From Mytilus californianus (taxonomy: Eukaryota), in the NCBI RefSeq assembly GCF_021869535.1, contig NW_026262604.1, forward strand, positions 34,782,001 to 34,846,000: a DNA stretch of 64,000 nucleotides, in the 5' to 3' direction. Within the stretch, counting starts at the first letter, position 1, and the number at the start of each line of letters is the position of its first letter. Below are positions 3,961-16,599 of this stretch, in pieces. Both the position numbers and the translations under genes were made by a program. The notes beneath the pieces were generated by a model. It was not told the origin of the DNA and ran no database searches. It worked only from the letters and a program-made list of their open reading frames with translations.

Positions 3961-4233
3961 AAAGGATAAATAAAATAGAGGTTTATCCTTAACTTTGCAT
4001 TTGTTGTTATTTTACTTATTAACACTAATAATGCACACCTTGTTCCCATTTTAAGTACTTTCATAATTTATTGTGTGTTGTGTTGCGTTAAAGATCTCAA
4101 TACAAGTTTATCTTAGACTAACCTATATAAAATAATAAAGGAATAGCAAAGACATTTTCATTTTATAGTGAGATATTAATGTAGGGTGTTTGGTTTCTTG
4201 AGTTGTTCAACTGCAATTGCATGCAACATACCT

Positions 4234-4270
4234 CGTCGTGTGAATATTATAGTGATGTATGTCCATTTTT
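4234..4270 (+). repeat. Left TIR of the Sola1-like element
   Basis: 32 of 37 positions match the reverse complement of 14772-14808. Confidence 0.88.
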
Positions 4271-4501
4271 TTCATAAATTGACCTATGAATACTACTAGC
4301 TTCCTTGTGTAATGATCTATCTCCCTATCTATCTATATCTCTGAATCTTGCTCCGTTTAGGCCATATAAAATACTTTTATAATGATCTATCTCCACATCT
4401 TTACTATTTGAAAAAGTTATACTGATCTATGTGTCATCCAATGAAAATGTTTGGATTCGGGTCACATGACATAAGCTAGCAAATGGAGAAAGTTTGAAGC
4501 T

Positions 4502-5512
4502 ATGACAGAAAAGTAAGTTATATTTAAGCTTTTTAGTTCAATTTTGTTTACTTAAAATCATTCTAATAATGAAATACTAGTGTTTAAATGTGTATTAACT
4601 AAGTGATATAAACATATTTCTGAAGAAAAAGAAAGAGATTAAAGTATAAAGCATGATATATGGAGATACAACATTTTAAAACTTTCATTTTCCAAGTTAA
4701 TTTGGAGATACATCATTATAATCTTATTTTTACAAAAACACCAATTAAGAATTAATTATACATTTTGATTATTTTACAGGGATAACTGTCTTTTGCTGTC
4801 AATCTTAAACCTACCTAATGTTCCTCTGATAAGGATATTTTTCTTCTTAGATCTAGAAGATCTCGTGCTTGTAGTAAATAGAGTTTGTAAAAGATGTTAC
4901 CACCTAATTAAATCAACACCTGTCTTGTGGAGAGTATTTGAATTTTATTGGCCTCAAATAATAAAGGAGGAAGACTTACCTTACATATTTAGACACTCAA
5001 AGAGCTTCAGAGTTTTCAATATTGGATATTGTACTTACACAGGCCGTCTTTCTGTGCTAGATTATAGTTTTATATCAAATTTAAGCTGTGCAAGAAAACT
5101 CACCTGGTTAAATTTAACTAGAACTTCAATATCTAGCACATGCTTTCTACAGTACCTACCAAATCTTGAAATTCTTGATCTTTCAGAGTGTGATAATCTG
5201 AATGACTGTGATTTTCATGTAGTATCGCAGTGTCATAAACTTCAAAACTTATATCTCTCATTTAATAAAGTAAACCCAAAGACAATCAAAGATATTGTTT
5301 CGTGTATACCACAATTAGAAATTTTAGATATATGTGGTATATTTTTGAAATTTTTTGAAGTGACATCAATTCTTGATCAGTGTTACTGGACACTTATGTC
5401 TATATACTTTAGTCTTGATTCATCTGTGAATGAAGAGGACTTACACAGGGAGATACACTTTAATTACACAGACCTTTCCTATCACATATATAAACCAATA
5501 TTTAATAATTAA
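4502..5512 (+). CDS. F-box/leucine-rich-repeat (FBXL-like) protein, 247 aa, join(4502..4512,4780..5512)
   Basis: F-box ILNLPNVPLIRIFFFLDLEDLVLVVNRVCKRCYHLI followed by LRRs (LTWLNLTRT, LEILDLSEC, LQNLYLSFN, LEILDICG). ATG ACA GAA AA|GTAAGT...TTTTACAG|G GAT splices in frame (MTEKDNCLLLSIL...). No lesions. Confidence 0.85.
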
Positions 5513-7555
5513 CAATGGATTCTAATAAAAATAATTCTGAAGAAGAGATTTACACAGTCTCCAATGATCAAGAATTATATTCTATAATTCAAAACAGTGA
5601 TGACCACTGCACTATTATAAAAGTCGATGAAAATCACAATTTTCAGTTTACAGATTCAGTTGTAAACAATATATCTGAAACCCATGTTAACAGAAGTTTT
5701 GATTTAAATGAGGAACATAACACTGAACATGTCTATGCAAATGTACAGATTCTAAATCCTACAACCAGTTCTACATGTTCTAATGAATTTCAAAGCGATT
5801 CAACTGATAACATTATATATACTGCAATAGCACTACCTAATGAAAATGAAACCATAGTTTCAAGAAATGCGGAAGATTTTGATACAATTGAACAAATTGA
5901 CGAAGTCTCAAGTCATCAAGGTGAGGGTAATGTTAACAATACAATAGTGAAACAAAATGTAGAAAAAACAGAAGAGCAAAATGAAAACACAATAGAAGAA
6001 CAAAATGTGGAAACAAGCGATGATACAAATGCAAGTGATGAAACGATGAGAAGTAGAAAAAGGAAAAGACAAACGGAATTATGGAAACAAAATCTTAGGA
6101 AAAGAAGACGTCAGTCAGGTATGGAATATATAAATACTAGGGGTAATACACAGCGAAAGAGAGAAGTTAAGAAAGGAACGAAGGACTGTAATGGTGGATG
6201 CAGATTTAAATGTAGTAAAAAAATATCAGAAACTGAAAGGAAAGCGATTTTTAAAACTTTTTGGTCACATAGCGATTCCGAAAAGAATGCATTTTATGGA
6301 AATAATATTGAAAAATTACAGAAAGAAAGGAAGCGAACAAACAAAGAAATTTCAAGGAAACAATTTACATACAAGTATCATATACCTAAGGAGTGTGGTA
6401 AAATTCGTGTTTGTAAAGAGTTTTTTCTTACAACTCTAGATATAAGTGGCCTTAGGATTCAGTGGTTTTTTGATAAAAAGTCTCCACAGTTTGAGGACAA
6501 AAGAGGAAGACATGTTAAAAGGAAAATAGCAGATGAGTCTAAAGACAGAATCGGAAACCATATAAATTCATTTCATCGAATTGACTCCCATTATTGTAGG
6601 TCTTCTGTAAAAAGACAATACCTTGATCCGTGTTTGTCGATAGCAAAAATGTATGAGCTTTACGTTTTAACTTGTAATGCTACAGGTGTAATTCCAGAAA
6701 AATATCATACATATAAATACATATTTAATTTGGAATTTAATTTGGGTTTCCACACTCCCAAAAAAGACCGATGTGATCATTGTGAGGAGTACAAATCCAA
6801 TAAGTTGATCAATCAAGTTAGTGAAGATTTAAAAATGAAGTATGAACTACACATAGTTGGAAAATCGAATTCCAAGGTGGAAAGAGATAACGACAGAAGT
6901 TCCGACAAGGCAGTTCTTTGTTTTGACATGGAAAATGTTATAACTTGTCCAAGGGCAAATATTTCAAATTTTTTTTACAAAAGAAAATTGAATGTGTTTA
7001 ACTTAACCGATCATTTGTCCTGAAATAAATGTGCATATAATGCAGTATGGTCAGAAAACATAGCAGGCAGAGGTGCCAATGATATTTCGAGTGCCTTACT
7101 CAAAATTTTAGAAAAAGTGCTTGAAGATTTTCCTACTTTAGAAACCATAACGTTATGGTCTGACTCTTGCATCCCCCAGAATCGTAACTCTATAGTCGTT
7201 AGTGCATTGCAGCATTTTATGAGAAGTGACACATCATATTCGCTCAAGTCTGTAGAACACAAATTTTCTGAGCCAGGCCACTCATCTATTCAAGAAGTTG
7301 ACTGTGTACACATTCATATTGAGAAAGCATTGAATCCTAGCGAGATTTTTAGTCCTGTCAGTTTTTTGCGAATGCCGACAAGAGTTCGTAAAAGATCAAT
7401 GAAAATGATTCAATTACAGCCTGAACACTTCTTTGATTTCCAGGCAGCAAGTCGGACATTTAAATATAACTCTGTACCCTTTACTAAGATAAAGTATATA
7501 AAGTTAGAAGTTGAAAAACCGTTACAAGTTTTGTATAAGGTATCATTTTCTGATG

Positions 7556-7701
7556 CCCCCCGGTGGATCGCTATCCTTGCCGTGGTCGGGGGGCTTGCGT
7601 GTCTCAGTGACCCCAAGAGCTATGCCAGCTGGAGCTTCGTCTCCTGGTAGGGTTACCCATGCTGGACAGGTCGAAGGGTAGAGACCAGACTAAAGTGATC
7701 C
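7556..7701 (+). ncRNA. HDV-like self-cleaving ribozyme at the LINE 5' end
   Basis: P1 CCCCCCG(7556-62)/CGGGGGG(7587-93); P2 GGATCGCT(7565-72)/AGTGATCC(7694-7701); P3/L3 around ATCC-TTGCCGT-GGT; long branched P4 closed by GTCTC/GAGAC; J4/2 C7690-TAA. Folded by eye. Confidence 0.72.
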
Positions 7702-8314
7702 GAACATCGTACGAGTTGCCCGATGTTTTGAATAAAATAGGCTCTCCAACCCGTTGGCCGTGGGTTGCTACCCGTGTCGGTGGTTGACGAGATCCTTGCG
7801 GATGAGGGCTGTAGCCAGACTCCTTACGGTCAGAAAATACCCGGACGGACGAGACTATTGTTCAATAAGCTGCTTTGGCTCCAATATCATCTAAACGGGA
7901 GGTCGGATGGACCCGGTTCGATCAATCGGCTGGTCATGTCGAGCCCTTCAGTTAATCCTCAACAATAAGCTTTCTTGTAATATTTTTCATTATATACACA
8001 TGTGTTTTAAATTAAGCTATTTATATTTCGGAAAACTGAAGAAGGCGATGGCTCATGGGTCAATCAAGTGGTACGCTTTCTATTTCGCTTGATGGATACG
8101 CTCTGCTTGAGTATACTATTCTTGGAACATCTGGTGCTTTCCGCAGTGGATCTTGGGTGCTAATTTTGAGGACCAGCTACGTTATACATGTTATACTTGG
8201 AGCTCGTTTTCAGCATTAGCACTTGACCCCGGCTCGCCACGGAAACACAGCATCGCCCTTGTAGGCACTCCGAGATGGGTGGATGACAAGAATGGTGAAT
8301 CTTTCTCATTTCCT

Positions 8315-9841
8315 ATGGCACAACAAAACCAACCCTCTAAATCAGCTTTAATACATAAAAAAGAAAATGTGATGATTCAGTGCCCTGTCAGGAAGATGAC
8401 AGTTGGCCAAGATTTATTGTAATAAAAGGAACAGATGAAAAACCAATTTCCAAAATATCTCCCTTTGTGATTCACAAACAAATTCAAAGCGTTGCTGGTA
8501 CTGTAAAAAAAGTTTCAAAAATGAGATCAGGCAATTTGTTGGTTGAATGTTCCAACAAAAGTCAATCAACAAATTTGCTTACACTGACAACAATTACAAA
8601 CTTTCCTGTTTCTGCCTCTCCTCACAACAGTTTGAACAGCTGTAAGGGGATCATTCGAGACAGAAGTCAATACCTTGGTGACCTTACCGTGGAAGAAATC
8701 TGTGAGGAACTTTCAAGCCAAGGTGTAACTGATGTTGTTAGATTTCAAATAAAAAAGAATGGAAATATAATCAAATTAAATACATATCTTTTGACATTTA
8801 GAACTCCAACTCCTCCTCCATCTATTACTTTAGGTTGCTTTGGAATCAGAGTTGACAGGTTTATCCCTAACCCAATTCGATGCTTCACTTGTCAAAAGTT
8901 TGGTCATGGAAGCAAACAATGTCGTGGTACGCAGAGATGCTTCAAGTGTTCTGACGAAGGACACGAGGGAACAACCTGTAGCTCTGAATCCTCTAAATGC
9001 GTAAACTGTGGTGAATCCCATTTTTCATCATATGGACTGCCCTGTTTACCTTAAAGAAAAAAATATTATCAAAATTAAAACAGAAAGAAACATCAGTTAC
9101 CCAGAAGCTAAACAGATAGCTTCTGTTTCGAATGATCTCCTTGTTTCGAACAGACCATCGTACGCCAGCAAAGTTGTGCGCTCATTCAGTCACGAGCATA
9201 CACAAACTCGCATGACCTGGCCTATTGATGCTGAGACATTTACAATGCTGCCTGTTGAAACAGAACCTAACGATAAAATATTAATTCCAAGAAAACCAAC
9301 ACCTTCTAAAACCAGTACTCAGTCAACTCAATCTTCCTTACAGAGCTCAATGTCATCATCTAAAAAAAATGAAAAAAAGAAATCAAATAAAAAAGATACA
9401 GTTAAATCAGACAGTTGGGGCGGTGAATCTGTCTGGGATCTTCCCAGTGACATAGATGATTCTTCCATCTCCAATAGTCCTCCTTCATCTGCATCTAATA
9501 AAACTAGTTTATCTTCTGCATCCAGTACAAAGTCTTCTAAAGCCCCGTCTCCTCTTCGTTCTCCAGAACAGAAGGATGTCCCAAAGAAGCCAGCAAATAC
9601 ATCCTCTCAGAAGTCTTCTGATTCGAGGCTGCGGGGTAGGGGTCGAGGCGGAGTAAAACCAGCTGCGCATGGTCCTGGAGATCGACGACTCTCCTCACAC
9701 AACAGATTTTCAACACTTAACGACGAATCAGAAATGGAAATCGAAAGTGTTCCGCCACCCGAAAGATTACAATCTCAGGGTGAGCGAAATAAGAATGCTG
9801 GCAAACTCGATAGCATTCGCCCGTCTATTAACAAATCATGA
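8315..9841 (+). pseudogene. LINE ORF1 (gag-like with CCHC zinc knuckles), two frameshifts (about 8370 and 9030)
   Basis: WPRFIVI, SPFVIHKQI, RSGNLLVEC, CFTCQKFGHGSKQC, CFKCSDEGHEGTTC, CVNCGESH...DCPVYLKEK; Ser/Lys-rich tail. Confidence 0.9.
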
Positions 9842-12800
9842 CTAATATCATCCAATGGAATTGCCGAGGTCTTAAAATAAATCTTCTCGAGTTAACGCTT
9901 CTAGTTCAGTCATTTTCACCTACTGCATTTTGTCTTCAAGAAACTCATTTAAAAGAAAGTGACAATGTATCTTTAAAAGGATACAACATGTATAGCACAT
10001 TTTCTAAGGTAGATGAACGTGCTGCAGGCGGATCATCCATTTTTGTGAAGGACAACGTCATTCATAGCACAGTCCAACTCACCACGGATCTGCAGGCAGT
10101 TGCAATTCGTTTATCATTAGATAAAACAATTACATTATGTTCTTTATATATTCCACCCAATTCAATTATAGATAAAGCTAAACTCAAAAACCTCACTGAT
10201 CAATTACCCTCACCATTTATACTTATGGACGACTTCAATGCACACAACCCCTTGTGGGGAAGCAAGTCTAATAATATCAAAGGTAAGATCATTGAGGACT
10301 TTGTCTCTCAAGAAGGATTATGCATTTTTAATAATGGATCTAATACTTATCTTCATCCTGGAAACGGGTCTTATTCTGCTATTGATATCACTATTTGCGA
10401 TCCCTCTCTTCTTCTGGATTATTCATGGCGTGTTCATGATGATCTATGTGGAAGTGATCACTTTCCAATAGTACTTGAACATCTTTTTACTTCTGCCCAA
10501 CAGAGAGTACCACGTTGGAAACTTGACAAGGCGGATTGGTCCTTGTTTGAGAATCTCTGTCAAGCGGAACTTCAGTCAAAGATGTTTGAGACTGTACAAG
10601 ATCCAATTTTAACTTTTAATACAGTTTTAACGTCAATTGCTGACAGAACTATTCCTAAGACCTCGGCAAATCCGAAACATCCCAGCAAACCATGGTTTGA
10701 TGATGCTTGTGATCAAGCAATAGGTGACCGTAAAAAATCTGAAAAACGGTTCAATCAACAACCAACGACAGAAAACTTGAGTAATTTCCGTGTTTTTCGC
10801 GCTAAGGCACGGCGGACTTGCAGGCAAGCACGACGAACGTCTTGGAAGAAATTTGTCTCGGAGATAACATCTCGCACTCCGATGACAAAAGTATGGAACA
10901 TGATACAAAAGATAAAAGGTAAAAATTCTAAAGCCACAGTTAAACATTTAAAAAATGGCAATGATTTATTAACATCTGAAAAGGATATTGCCAACAAGCT
11001 TGGTGAAACTTTTGCGAAATCTTCTTCTTCTAACAACTACAGGGAAGATTTTAAAAAAGTTAAAAAACAAAAAGAAAAAATTAAATTAAACTTTAAATCA
11101 AAAAATGGTGAAAATTATAATAAACTCTTTTCTCTTGAAGAACTTAAAACATCTCTGTCAAAAGCCCATGATACAGCTTGTGGGCCTGATAATATTCACT
11201 ACCAACTGTTAAAACACTTGCCAGATTCCTCGCTGGAAGCTCTTTTGCAGCTTATGAATAACATCTGGGAATCTGGTGATTTACCATCAATCTGGAAGCT
11301 TGCAACCGTCGTGCCTATTCCAAAACCAAGTAAAGATCACACGGATCCTATTAATTATCGGCCAATTGCTCTTACCAGTTGTGTCTGTAAAACACTAGAA
11401 CGGATGGTCAATGATCGCCTTGTTTGGTTCCTGGAATCTAATAGGCTTTTAGCCAATATCCAGTGTGGATTCCGCCAAGGTCGCAGTACTCTTGACCATC
11501 TTGTTCGATTCGAATCATTTGTTCGTAATGGTTTTGCGAAAAATGAACATGTAGTGTCGGTCTTTTTCGATCTAGAAAAAGCCTATGATACTACATGGAA
11601 GTATGGTATTTTAAAAGATCTGTTTGATATGGGGTTGAAAGGCAATATGCCAAATTTTATTTCGAATTTTTTATCTAACAGACAATTTAATGTTAGAGTA
11701 AATTCAACCATGTCTGATCTGTATGATCAAGAGATGGGTGTCCCTCAGGGCAGTATTTTATCTGTTACATTATTTAGTCTTAAAATCAACTGCCTTGTTG
11801 AAGTTTTAAAAAGTAATATTGAAGGTTCATTGTATGTTGATGACTTTTTAATATGTTATAGAGGCAAAAATATGAATAACATAGAAAGACAATTACAGTT
11901 ATGTCTTGGAAGAATTGAAAAATGGGCCTCGGAAAATGGGTTTAAATTTTCCACTTCAAAAACGGTCGGGATGCATTTTTGTAACAAAAGGAAATTGCAT
12001 CTTGATCCAGAACTCACTTTGTACGGCAACCCAATCAAAATGGTTGATGAAACCAAATTTCTTGGGTTAATTTTCGATAAAAAGTTAACCTTTCTACCCC
12101 ATATCAAAATGTTAAAATCGAAATGTTTAAAAGCATTAGATATTTTAAAAGTTGTCGGCAGCACCGACTGGGGTGCTGATCGCAACATTTTACTTAATTT
12201 ATATAGATCTCTCGTTAGATCTAAACTAGATTATGGCTCTGTAGTGTATGGCTCTGCAAAGAAGTCCTACATACAGATTCTTGATGCTGCGCATCATCAG
12301 GGTTTGCGTCTCTGTCTTGGCGCATTTAAAACCTCACCAGTTGAGAGTCTGTATGTAGAGGCTGATGAGCACTCACTCTCTAACAGACGTTTGAAGCTTG
12401 GACTTCAATATGCTGTCAAACTAAAAGCCTACTCAGATAATCCTGCCTACAGCTGTGTTTTTAATCCAATTTATGAAGATATTTTGGCAAAACATGAAAA
12501 TAAAATTCCTCCGTTAGGTATACGTTTAAAACCACATTTAGCTTCTTTTGATTTAAAATCTGTTGCTCAAGTTGAAACTTGCAATTGTCCTCCATGGGAA
12601 CTTCCCAAACCAAAAATGATATTTGATCTCCGTGAACACAATAAAAATAAAACAAATCCTCTTTTAATTCAGCAACACTATGCTGAAATCAAAGCCAATT
12701 ATTAAGATTTCTCAACTGTCTATACTGATGGATCAAAAGATGGTGACAGAGTTGCATCTGCTGCTGTCTTCAGGGACAGAGCTGCAACTCTCCGTTTGCC

Positions 12801-13508
12801 ATCTGATGCATCGATCTTTACTGCTGAAGCAGAAGCAATAATTTTGGCTTTGAAATTTATTGCTTCTTCAGATAAATCCAAATTTATTATATGTTCTGAT
12901 TCACTTTCATGCTTACAAGCTATACAAAATACTAAAATTAAAAACCCAACAATTCTAAAAATTTTATATGTAATGAGGAATTTAAAAATTCTTCTTAAAG
13001 AAATATTTTTTCTATGGGTGCCGAGTCATGTTGGAATCCTTGGAAACACAGCTGTAGACCTTGAGGCAAAGAATGCCCTGGGTGACCCTTTATCTAACTG
13101 TGATATACCATATACCGATTTTAAATCTAATATTAGAGAATATGTTTTTAATATATTGAAAAATGAATGGAGTAAAAAATATGGTAATAAATTACATGAA
13201 ATTAAACCTAATTTGTGTAAACCTTTCAATAATTTTATGTGCAGAAAAGATCAGTGTGTTATTTCTAGATGTCGTATTGGTCATACTAGAATAACACACG
13301 AATATCTTTTAAAAAATGAAGTAGAACCACAATGTATACCTTGTAACTGCAAGTATACTATAAAACATGTTTAATCAATTGTATTGACTTTGCTGATATT
13401 CGTAAGAAGCATTTCAATGTTAATAATATGTATGATTTATTTAATAATGTTCCATTTACAAATATTGTTTCATTCTTAAAAGAAGTTGGAATATATTCTA
13501 AAATATAA
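9838..13508 (+). pseudogene. LINE ORF2: APE endonuclease, RT, RNase H, Zn motif; stop at 12703-12705 and 1-nt deletion near 13370
   Basis: IIQWNCRG, CLQETH, DFNAH, SDHFP; YRPIALTS, FFDLEKAYD, GVPQGS, YVDD; YTDGSK, CSDSLS, WVPSHVGI. Confidence 0.95.
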
Positions 13509-14771
13509 AAATGTTATTATATTTAAAACGATTTTAAATTTGATCACGTTATCTTTATGTTCATTTTTATTTGTAAATAATCAATTTGCTTTCATCTAGA
13601 ATTTTAGTTTATTGAAGGGCCTTTTGTCTGATTTTAAGAATATGCTTTAAATTGTAAAAAATATTCGAATTAGCTCTCGCCGCGATATAGCCTTGTTGTG
13701 CTAATGCGGCGTAAAGCAACCAACAATCAATCAATCAATCATTTTCTGATGATAGTTTAAATGAGGTTTCCATTGTTGCACAGAATACAAGAAAAAAACA
13801 GAAAACTGTTGTCATGCCAAAAATTAATATGCTGACCAAATCAAACTTATTGTCAAAGGAAAAAGTAAAGGATTTGAAAGACATGTTAAAGTATATGCCT
13901 CTCGATGACAGAAAGTATTATGAGACTGTTTTCAAGAGTTACAAGTAAGCTACAAGACGTAGACTCATTATTGCATTGTCAGTTTACGATGTTAGCAGAA
14001 TTATCGTCTGAAGAGACTTCAGGTATGCTGGACCTTTACATCCTGAATGGTTTTTGTGTTTAAGTTTTTGTTTAAATCTTTTTAATTATTCTTTACCACA
14101 AATGTAAAAGTTTAGAGGAAAACTGTTGCATGTTGAAGAGGTAATAATTTTCAGTGTCATTGTTTTGAAAGGAATTCAAAATGCTCATTCTCTGGGTTGC
14201 TGTTATTTACTGTTTGTGATTATTGTTTTTTTTTTATATATTATTTGTTATTTGTTTTGGTTAAATATACAAGAAGTATTTCTTTTCTTTCTTTTTGCCA
14301 AGATTTTCCACGATTATGCTTTATATTTTGTATTGAAAAAATTTTGTTGTGCGTTCAAATTAAAGATTCTATCTTCATGACTTAATGTTTTCCAGTTAAT
14401 TATCATTCTTGACAAATAATGGTGTCAAGAATATACGATGGTAAAAGATATACATAAAAATCATAATTTTGAATCCTTTAAATTCTTATTCTTCAATGCT
14501 TTCGTAGTTTACTGGTATAATATTATAATATAATAAGTCCAGTACCATTTTAATTCTTGTAAAATATGTGACCAAAAGATAAAAATGTTCTATCTCCAAA
14601 TATTTTATGTTTTTTTTTTTTATTTAAACAGTGTGTTAGTCAATATCGGTAACGAGAAAACATCAACATTCATCAATTCAAAAAACACAATAAATTAATC
14701 AATGCTCTTTCATTGCTCCTTGGTAGAAAAGCAGTCATTACAATTTCAGATGGAGTTATCTCCATTTTCAA

Positions 14772-14808
14772 AAATATGGACATAGAACACTATTAGATTC
14801 ACACGACG
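14772..14808 (-). repeat. Right TIR of the Sola1-like element
   Basis: Reverse complement of 4234-4270, followed by the TSD ACCT. Confidence 0.88.
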
Positions 14809-16599
14809 ACCTGTTATTGTAGTTAAAATAAAGCACTTTCTCTATCACAATTTCTTCAAACATTAATGTACAATGATGCCATTTTCACTCATTTTGATAT
14901 TTGTTCAATCATTTGCTTTAATATATGTTATTACTTGAGTTTATAACACGAACAACATTTTTTACCTGCATCTTACTGTTGTCGAAGGGCAGTCAGTTTC
15001 AATATTCTGCTATCGTGGACACTTCCTAGCATATTTCCCTTCATGCTGATAAATCTGTATTTGCCATTGATTGAAAAAGTAAACCATCGTTATGACTTGT
15101 GAGAAAAAAAAAACAGTAAAAAATAAAGAGCTTGTTAAGCTGCAATTCTAATCATGTGCAATATGATGTAGTTGTTGAACAAGCAATTAGGTTTGTGTCA
15201 TTTAATCAGAATGGCTATTAGGTTGGGTTTTTCTGTCATTTGTTTGTTGTCGTATTGGCGCAAATCTCACATCTTCTGCAGGTTTTTATTCGTTTGCTAT
15301 ATTCTTCTTCTATGAATATACTTACATGAAGATGAATAGAACATATATGTACCAAAATTTATAATGTAAAGTGAACAGATTTATTTTGTCTTTTCAACTT
15401 CTACCGCTCTTTTGATATATGGGAACATGTCTGTATGGCAAGATTCATGTGACCTTGACCTAATTTTTATGGTTCATTAGTCAATGTTAAAGTGCTTTTC
15501 TGTCAGGTTATCAGATAATATAAACAATAGATTTATTGAAACTTATTTTCCTCATCAAATCTATATTTGTTTTTTAAACAACGAGATCTTATCATATAAG
15601 GATCTGATAACTAGAGCTATCAGAACAATATATAAAAAATACACCAAAATGAAAAATAACGAAGTTTAAACTTTGCTTGCATTTTAACAAATTTCACCAT
15701 AATAGATTTGGTAAAAAGTAAAATTTCAAAAATACCGATCTTCAAAGAAAATTCTAAACGGAAAGTCCTCTATCTTTTGAATTTATGTTAATTATCATTT
15801 TTATTTAATATTTGATCAGTAGAGGAAAAGGAAAATGGTCAAAACCCAACTCATGTATTTCCAGTTTTTAGCGTGACTATATCAATTGGAGAACTTACAT
15901 ACCAAGAGAGGTGTCTCATTGTCAATTGTATTACATCTAAATAGGCTGTGTATTTGAGTACTTTCTCACAAAGTTTGTAAAAAAACTACTTATTTGTGAT
16001 GGGGAATGCCATTCTTCCTGCTTAAATACTTTGGTTCCCATCATCATCCCTTTAAGTTATATAATTCTTCAGCTACATCTTCTTCATTTGGTCGTTTACC
16101 TGGTGTGTCAAAAATATTTATGTATTGAAGATATGTAGTCTTTGACTTTTGTTGTCGCATTGGCAATCATACCACATCTTTTTATTTTTATAAAGTTTAT
16201 ATAGCATTTTTATATAGGTAAATATTTACAACTATATTCCCAAAACTATGTATATCAGAGGTAATTATGGTAAACAATTGCAACATTGGGCAAATCATAT
16301 GCTGTTGTTTATTTTCATTCATACAATAAATGGTTTAAACACAGAAAGGAGTTATTCAACAGCATATCAACATGATTTAAACCCCACTGCTGACATACTA
16401 ACTATAAATAACTCTTAACATGACATAGATGTTTTTATTAGAAGTATGATTAAGGTAAGCTCTTGTGTCTTTCTAGTATTACATGGGGTGATTTAGTGCT
16501 GTTTTTAAGTCATTTTCCGATATTTATTTTTTTCTCCTATTTCTCCTTTATTTATTTGACTTGAATTCATAACTATCACTCTAAAGCATGTGATCAGAA

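Follow-up and report, generated by a model that had tools for sequence, protein, structure and literature searches.

The 64,000-nt stretch of Mytilus californianus DNA analysed in this study (the window; positions 34,782,001 to 34,846,000 of contig NW_026262604.1) contains, at its positions 4234-14808, a Sola1-type DNA transposon in which a gene for an F-box protein with leucine-rich repeats (LRRs) is located directly upstream of the transposase gene. As judged by comparison with related loci, this F-box gene was shown to be an ancestral, selected and co-mobilised second gene of one clade of Sola1 elements. With a probability of roughly 0.55, we regard the window element as a dead copy of a Sola1-type lineage with two genes, in which the F-box protein would represent the element's own substrate receptor for SCF (SKP1-CUL1-F-box protein) ubiquitin ligases.

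A word search with the F-box protein returned a small family of 17 proteins at 48-94% identity, and the loci that were compared are the contigs of the F-box family members together with those of the transposase relatives. An F-box open reading frame (ORF) is located just upstream of the transposase in seven out of seven lineages (L002, L008/L009, L010, L011, L012, L025 and L030), which include three Mytilus species as well as the limpet Lottia gigantea, and the F-box proteins of these lineages are 33-66% identical to that of the window. The identity to the window protein amounts to 66% in L008 (M. edulis) and L009 (a Logan contig), where the F-box stop and the transposase start overlap as ATGA, and to 61% in the metagenome contig L002, which has terminal inverted repeats (TIRs) at both ends and a transposase starting 11 nt past the F-box stop. 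It is 45% in the ENA contig L011, with the F-box ORF directly upstream of the transposase, 37% in L. gigantea (L012), where the element spans 6725-10682 and has TIRs starting with CGTC, and 34% in L025, a contig filed under a metagenome-assembled genome (MAG) of Sedimenticola, in which some 500 nt separate the ORF from the first downstream match to the transposase. The Logan contig L007 (48%) ends 10 nt past the F-box stop, and any transposase would lie beyond its end. L030, the contig of P0051, belongs to the earliest branch of the clade; it was picked afterwards as a test, and its transposase is similarly preceded at a short distance by an F-box gene. In the beetle Diabrotica (L013), the mosquito Aedes (L014), L026 and L027, no F-box ORF was detected within about 4-6 kb upstream by tblastn and the family hidden Markov model in six frames. 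In a maximum-likelihood tree of 70 transposases, six carriers fall into a single clade of 20 rows that received a support of 99 in the Shimodaira-Hasegawa-like approximate likelihood ratio test, and these four non-carriers are placed outside this clade; therefore, one change explains the distribution. The insertion sites are independent, with the target-site duplications (TSDs) ACCT in the window, TCGT in L010 (M. galloprovincialis) and ATAT in L012, and the flanks of the window, L001 (M. coruscus) and L010 do not align to each other. Since the F-box ORF is present in every related mollusc copy examined, the gene belongs to the element. An earlier note on this DNA had asked whether the ORF is always present in other copies and had taken its absence as a sign of a one-off capture; all seven clade members carry it, and the remark in the same note that such cargo is not known as a standard Sola feature agrees with its lack in the four more distant relatives. 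The M. edulis copy L008 (9736-13609) is an internally deleted, non-autonomous member of a sister subfamily in which the F-box ORF is intact and the TIRs are present at either end, and which is devoid of the catalytic core of the transposase.

The ratio of nonsynonymous to synonymous substitutions (dN/dS) in the F-box ORF is 0.149 between the window and L010, 0.286 between the window and L001, and 0.139 between L010 and L001, with binomial p values against neutrality of 2e-8, 0.002 and 2e-10, respectively; the corresponding dN/dS value for the transposase of the window-L010 pair is 0.224. Between lineages, the proportion of nonsynonymous differences in the F-box ORF is 0.20-0.36 at saturated synonymous sites (pS 0.75-0.92), and the deep branches radiate in star-like fashion. 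No interruption of the ORF is seen in six lineages. As estimated from these codon comparisons, the F-box ORF was shown to be under purifying selection no weaker than that acting on the transposase, in line with the dN/dS below 1 for which the earlier note had proposed to look (0.14-0.29 within the family).

In the window, the F-box ORF is listed at 4793-5512 on the forward strand, and the spliced gene comprises 247 codons without any stop or frameshift. Exon 1 (4502-4512; ATG ACA GAA AA, with a phase 2 donor) is followed by a GT-AG intron (4513-4779) and by exon 2 (4780-5512), which encodes the F-box (approximately residues 8-51) and about six to seven LRRs and ends with the stop codon TAA at 5510-5512. 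The splice sites consist of GT at 4513, in the donor context AA/GTAAGT, and AG at 4778-4779, with the acceptor boundary at 4779/4780, and the spliced product begins with MTEK followed by DNCLLLSILNLP... (also read as MTEK-DNCLLLSILNLPNVPLIRIFFFLDLEDL...). When the 5' regions of six copies from five lineages with saturated synonymous sites were aligned, the ATG, a GTRAGT donor (GTAAGT in the window), a YAG acceptor and phase 2 were found to be kept, while sequence and length of the intron drift. The splice model is supported by this conservation of exon 1, donor, acceptor and phase in five lineages. The densest invariant columns of the alignment of the six diverged copies fall on a block at 4459-4501 (forward strand) with an E-box-like palindrome (GGGTCACATGAC), the core of which is CACATG in the window and CACGTG in L002 and L030. 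Including exon 1, the stretch of about 60 nt at 4459-4518 (GGGTCACATGAC ... ATGACAGAAAAG, followed by GTAAGT) shows the highest conservation of all non-coding sequence in the 5' region, and its part at 4459-4501 is likely to constitute a putative internal promoter and 5' untranslated region of the F-box gene. A poly(A) signal (AATAAA) at 5524-5529, just past the F-box stop, is not conserved in L002 or L008.

The translation of exon 2 (4781-5509) matches the Pfam families PF12937 (F-box-like; 29.8 bits at a cut-off of 24.3) and PF00646 (22.3 bits at a cut-off of 20.5), the LRR matches being weaker. A profile of the family retrieved SKP2 (E 8e-13), FBXL2 (1.9e-12) and FBXL17 (1.9e-11) in alignments that span both the F-box and the repeats. 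Structural modeling by AlphaFold2 (AF2) yielded a model with a mean predicted local distance difference test score (pLDDT) of 84.7 and a predicted template modeling score of 0.81, in which three short N-terminal helices are followed by a strand-helix solenoid; the LRR region (residues 80-235) is predicted at a pLDDT above 90 as alternating strand/helix repeats. The best matches of this model among PDB structures, as determined by Foldseek, are SKP2 in SCF complexes (TM score 0.57-0.65, 21-22% identity), followed by FBXL2, FBXL17, FBXL3, KDM2A and TIR1. The conserved columns of the family comprise LP, IF, VCxR and LW of the F-box and, in addition, W109, E130 and Y158 within the LxxLxL strands, three residues which are expected from the repeat motif to be exposed. 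The family is small, with 26 proteins recovered with its alignment at E<=1e-10, and was encountered in transposon context only; no named cellular FBXL orthologue is among these 26, and when metagenomes were scanned with the F-box alignment, generic LRR proteins alone were retrieved (25-42% identity). By sequence and predicted fold, the protein was shown to be of the FBXL type of SCF substrate receptors, with its binding to SKP1 being a prediction, and the FBXL-like combination of F-box and LRRs named in the earlier note is thus corroborated by Pfam matches above cut-off, the profile match to SKP2 and the SKP2-like fold. As in SKP2, FBXL2 and FBXL17, an N-terminal F-box precedes an LRR solenoid; unlike these receptors, the mussel protein is much shorter (247 aa, about six to seven repeats) and is encoded inside a transposon.

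The boundaries of the element were determined from a repeat search and by reading its ends. The search reported a single long inverted pair in the window (4233-4277 and 14765-14809; 45 nt, 84% complementary), and the ends as read place the termini at 4234 (CGTCGTGTG...) and 14808. The left TIR (CGTCGTGTGAAT...) spans 4234-4277 on the forward strand, with a terminus that is conserved in L001, L002 and L010, and the right TIR spans 14765-14808 on the reverse strand. Identical copies of ACCT at 4230-4233 and 14809-14812 flank the element as a perfect 4-bp TSD. The F-box gene accordingly resides inside the TIRs and the TSD and adjoins the transposase, as claimed before, since the transposase ORF starts at 5515, 2 nt past the F-box stop. 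The element occurs once in the window, in which the count of N is 0. The TSD is 4 bp long in all copies that were read, including those of L010 and L012 given above, and three out of four positions match in L001 and L002 (AAGT/AAAT in L002). The passage of PMC10741241 that refers to Bao et al. 2009 describes the Sola superfamily by DDD transposases and 4-bp TSDs, and the passage of PMC3845634 citing the same work gives AWWT/AWDT as the target preference of Sola1. Two of the five sites read, ATAT in L012 and AAGT/AAAT in L002, fit this preference, and ACCT in the window and TCGT in L010 do not. The 19-nt TIR block published for Sola1_NA (PMC3845634), a miniature inverted-repeat transposable element (MITE) of Bombyx, Rhodnius and Heliconius, agrees with the window sequence 4251-4269 at 17 out of 19 nt and lies, as in Bombyx, 17 nt inside of the terminus; no other match with up to three mismatches occurs in the window, where 0.06 are expected by chance. 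The 4-bp TSDs, the DDD triad of a transposase with an RNase H-like fold and a TIR block like that of a Sola1 MITE make the element fit Sola1, to which the earlier note had assigned it, and it is provisionally classified as such. A subterminal motif, ATGATCTATCTCC, occurs at 4312 and 4382 on the forward strand and in inverted copies at 4662 and 4704 inside the F-box intron, and the Lottia TIR ends in the same motif (GGAGATAGAAC); these copies are candidate binding sites for the transposase.

The first part of the transposase ORF (5515-7020, forward strand) codes for a disordered N-terminus, a basic stretch resembling a nuclear localization signal, Cys/His motifs and the first catalytic Asp (6925-6927), and is 91% identical to P0018. 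It ends at a premature TAA (7021-7023; S-stop-NKCAY in the window versus SLNKCAY in L001 and SINKCAY in L002), a position which is occupied by Leu or Ile in other copies. The second part (7024-7555) contributes the catalytic Asp residues at 7162-7164 and 7300-7302 and a weak Pfam match to DUF7869, and the last 65 codons resume at 13752 and run to the stop at 13946-13948, this segment (13752-13948) matching the C-terminus of P0018. As read from the translations, the 502-codon ORF from 5515 and the same-frame ORF from 7117 in the ORF list of the window are one frame broken by the TAA. In L010 of M. galloprovincialis, both the F-box ORF and the 734-aa transposase P0018 (91% identity in the conserved part) are intact. 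The catalytic residues of P0018, D460, D539 and D585, show no or almost no variation among 20 relatives. In the AF2 model, the transposase core has the order b1-b2-b3-a-b4-a-b5-a, in which strand 1 ends with one of the Asp residues, another follows strand 4 and the remaining one is on the helix after that; the resemblance of the fold to IstA, TnsB, retroviral integrases and Hermes is weak, and Pfam yielded DUF7869 alone, below threshold. According to this model, the protein is a DDD-type transposase on an RNase H-like fold. The distance from the F-box stop to the transposase start ranges from the ATGA overlap to about 100 nt among the lineages, and reinitiation or a separate transcript are candidates for the translation of the downstream ORF. 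A fusion of the two ORFs by frameshifting was also considered and appears unlikely, because the relative frame varies among lineages (-1 in three Mytilus lineages, +1 in four others) and the overlap in the window is just two codons, with no slippery site.

The transposase is interrupted at 7555/7556 by a nested long interspersed nuclear element (LINE), a retrotransposon without long terminal repeats that is not part of the transposon and in which Pfam identified a gag-like zinc knuckle, an APE endonuclease, a reverse transcriptase and an RNase H-like domain. Two LINE-free copies, L001 (9734-14175) and L010 (6678-11309), align to the window up to 7555 and again from 13738, and therefore the LINE corresponds to 7556-13737 (forward strand). 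It is flanked by a duplication of 13-14 bp (7542-7555 and 13738-13751), possesses a (CAAT)n tail and is apparently full-length. The 5' end of the LINE is the sole part of the examined stretch with RNA-seq reads, and in many reads and contigs the similarity to the window begins at 7556 with unrelated sequence upstream, which fits many LINE copies elsewhere in the genome.

Given its domain structure, it might be hypothesized that the F-box protein docks via its F-box on the host SKP1-CUL1-RBX1 ligase and uses its conserved LRR face to deliver a conserved target to this ligase for ubiquitination, which would favour transposition. As the target, a host factor that limits transposition by silencing, chromatin or repair appears likelier, and the transposase or a post-transposition complex comes second. 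Degradation of a host silencing factor and control of the transposase, the two options of the earlier note, likewise keep the rank of hypotheses. It might further be speculated, although with clearly less confidence and more doubt than belief, that a Sola1 clade of bivalves and gastropods has long encoded an SCF receptor which removes a conserved host brake, i.e. a counter-defence gene. If this is true, it would represent a transposon counter-defence of a kind so far known from viruses. The M. galloprovincialis copy L010, with both genes intact, renders the idea directly testable.

A number of observations argue against this assignment. The F-box part of the AF2 model was predicted with moderate confidence (pLDDT 53-71), and exon 1 was not recognised in L030, the most divergent lineage. 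No RNA-seq reads were located on 4134-7555 in one run of the species, of which about 6% was read, a result that does not show silence, and no splice joint was found in three contig runs, the contigs of which cover the intron unspliced and probably represent DNA. Of the spliced GT-AG gene proposed in the earlier note, the intron is upheld by its conserved position and phase, and no RNA read across 4512/4780 was obtained from the same partly read run. The F-box ORF of L001 contains a stop, indicating that single old copies decay. Moreover, the pairwise identities of F-box and transposase proteins from six lineages show no significant correlation (r 0.38, p 0.16); thus, co-divergence is not demonstrated beyond co-location. 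Finally, the window copy itself cannot transpose: as deduced from its premature stop and from the splitting of the transposase by the nested 6.2-kb LINE, the element is dead, with an F-box gene that is free of lesions. The earlier statement that there are no lesions is hence valid for the F-box gene and does not extend to the transposase.

Among the other explanations, the one that survives best, albeit as an unlikely one, is that the F-box protein marks the transposase or a post-cleavage/strand-transfer complex for removal by SCF, which would limit the dose of the enzyme or clear the complex for repair. A target encoded by the element would explain the retention of the gene across bivalves and gastropods, and the two ORFs are tightly juxtaposed in the Mytilus lineages (2 nt, 11 nt or the ATGA overlap). 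Analogous cases are the complexes of bacteriophage Mu, which need ClpX, and RAG2, which is a substrate of SKP2-SCF. However, the divergences of the two proteins are uncorrelated, and L008 keeps an intact F-box ORF without the catalytic core. Somewhat less probable still is an accessory function without ubiquitination, in which the LRRs would tether or import the transposase or bind chromatin, and the F-box would be a vestige or an anchor for SKP1. Two-gene DNA transposons with non-catalytic partners do exist, such as Harbinger with its Myb-like partner, and the single-sequence scores of the F-box are modest; yet LP, IF, VCxR and LW of the F-box are among the best conserved columns in all lineages, which argues for a working SKP1 interface, and the profile aligns with SKP2 over F-box and LRRs. 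That the host has domesticated the family, so that host selection keeps the F-box ORFs and the transposon remnants are incidental, we consider highly improbable. The F-box ORF is indeed intact where the transposase is broken (window, L002 and L008), but with about 730 nt, this ORF offers mutations a far smaller target than does a transposase gene of about 2.2 kb. In addition, all copies with flanks are found in element context, with TIRs where these are readable, L010 has both genes whole, L001 has lost the ORF by mutation, and several diverged lineages exist side by side, as subfamilies of a transposon would. A one-off capture or chance flanking of a host F-box gene between the TIRs of a single copy, for which it may be said that DNA transposons do capture host gene fragments and that the window holds just one copy, is already refuted by the related loci, in which the same ORF occupies the same position in seven diverged lineages including Lottia, within TIRs and TSDs at unrelated sites and in carriers forming one clade, and by a dN/dS far below 1 and the lack of a close cellular homologue in our searches.

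The preferred reading, an SCF receptor encoded by the element itself, also bears on current annotations. Contigs L025-L029, filed under MAGs of Sedimenticola, Poribacteria and Cytophagales, hold these animal transposons and are almost certainly host DNA misbinned into bacterial MAGs; P0137 bears the name 'F-box protein [Sedimenticola sp.]'. Mytilus annotations list ORFs of the transposon (in L001 and L008; models P0002, P0016 and P0017) as 'F-box domain-containing protein', and in some of these gene models, F-box and transposase fragments of decayed copies are joined. Thus, ORFs of a transposon pass as F-box proteins of the host in Mytilus gene sets and of a bacterium in a MAG. A further transposase relative, P0117 (36% identity), from a 2,075-nt contig of a Candidatus Thiodiazotropha MAG, contains a cysteine-protease domain of the OTU type at residues 186-281. 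This carrier of a deubiquitinase-type domain clusters with L026 and L027 and not with the F-box clade, and its OTU domain adds a second module of the ubiquitin system to this transposon superfamily. Should the proposed counter-defence be true, an OTU protease on a related transposase would point to a wider tapping of the ubiquitin system by DNA transposons of molluscs.

A full-text literature search yielded no description of an F-box gene in a Sola element or another cut-and-paste transposon of animals, although a mention by Bao et al. 2009 or in Repbase is possible. The mussel element shares with Sola1 its TIRs, the 4-bp length of its TSDs and an RNase H-like transposase fold with a DDD triad, and its length is near the 5.4-kb mean of curated bivalve Sola1 elements (PMC10294476). 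The Sola1 elements described from insects are 2.3-2.8 kb in length and have a single ORF of 630 aa (PMC3845634), to which organization the mussel clade adds a spliced F-box/LRR gene upstream of the transposase. A second, non-catalytic gene is likewise found in PIF/Harbinger DNA transposons, which combine a transposase with a Myb-like partner; this superfamily, however, is unrelated to Sola1, and the mussel F-box/LRR protein stands alone. To our knowledge, eukaryotic cut-and-paste transposons possess few accessory genes, the majority of which code for DNA-binding proteins. F-box adaptors which hijack the SCF ligase of the host are known from viruses and bacteria, namely P0 of poleroviruses, Clink of nanoviruses, the ankyrin/PRANC proteins of poxviruses and VirF of Agrobacterium. 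These effectors have known targets, whereas the carrier in the mussel is a cut-and-paste transposon and the target a hypothetical one; in both cases, a genetic parasite is equipped with an F-box adaptor of its own. Kept under selection across a transposon clade, an F-box adaptor such as the mussel protein would clearly be a candidate for a transposon-encoded factor that manipulates the protein turnover of the host and is comparable to the viral F-box effectors.

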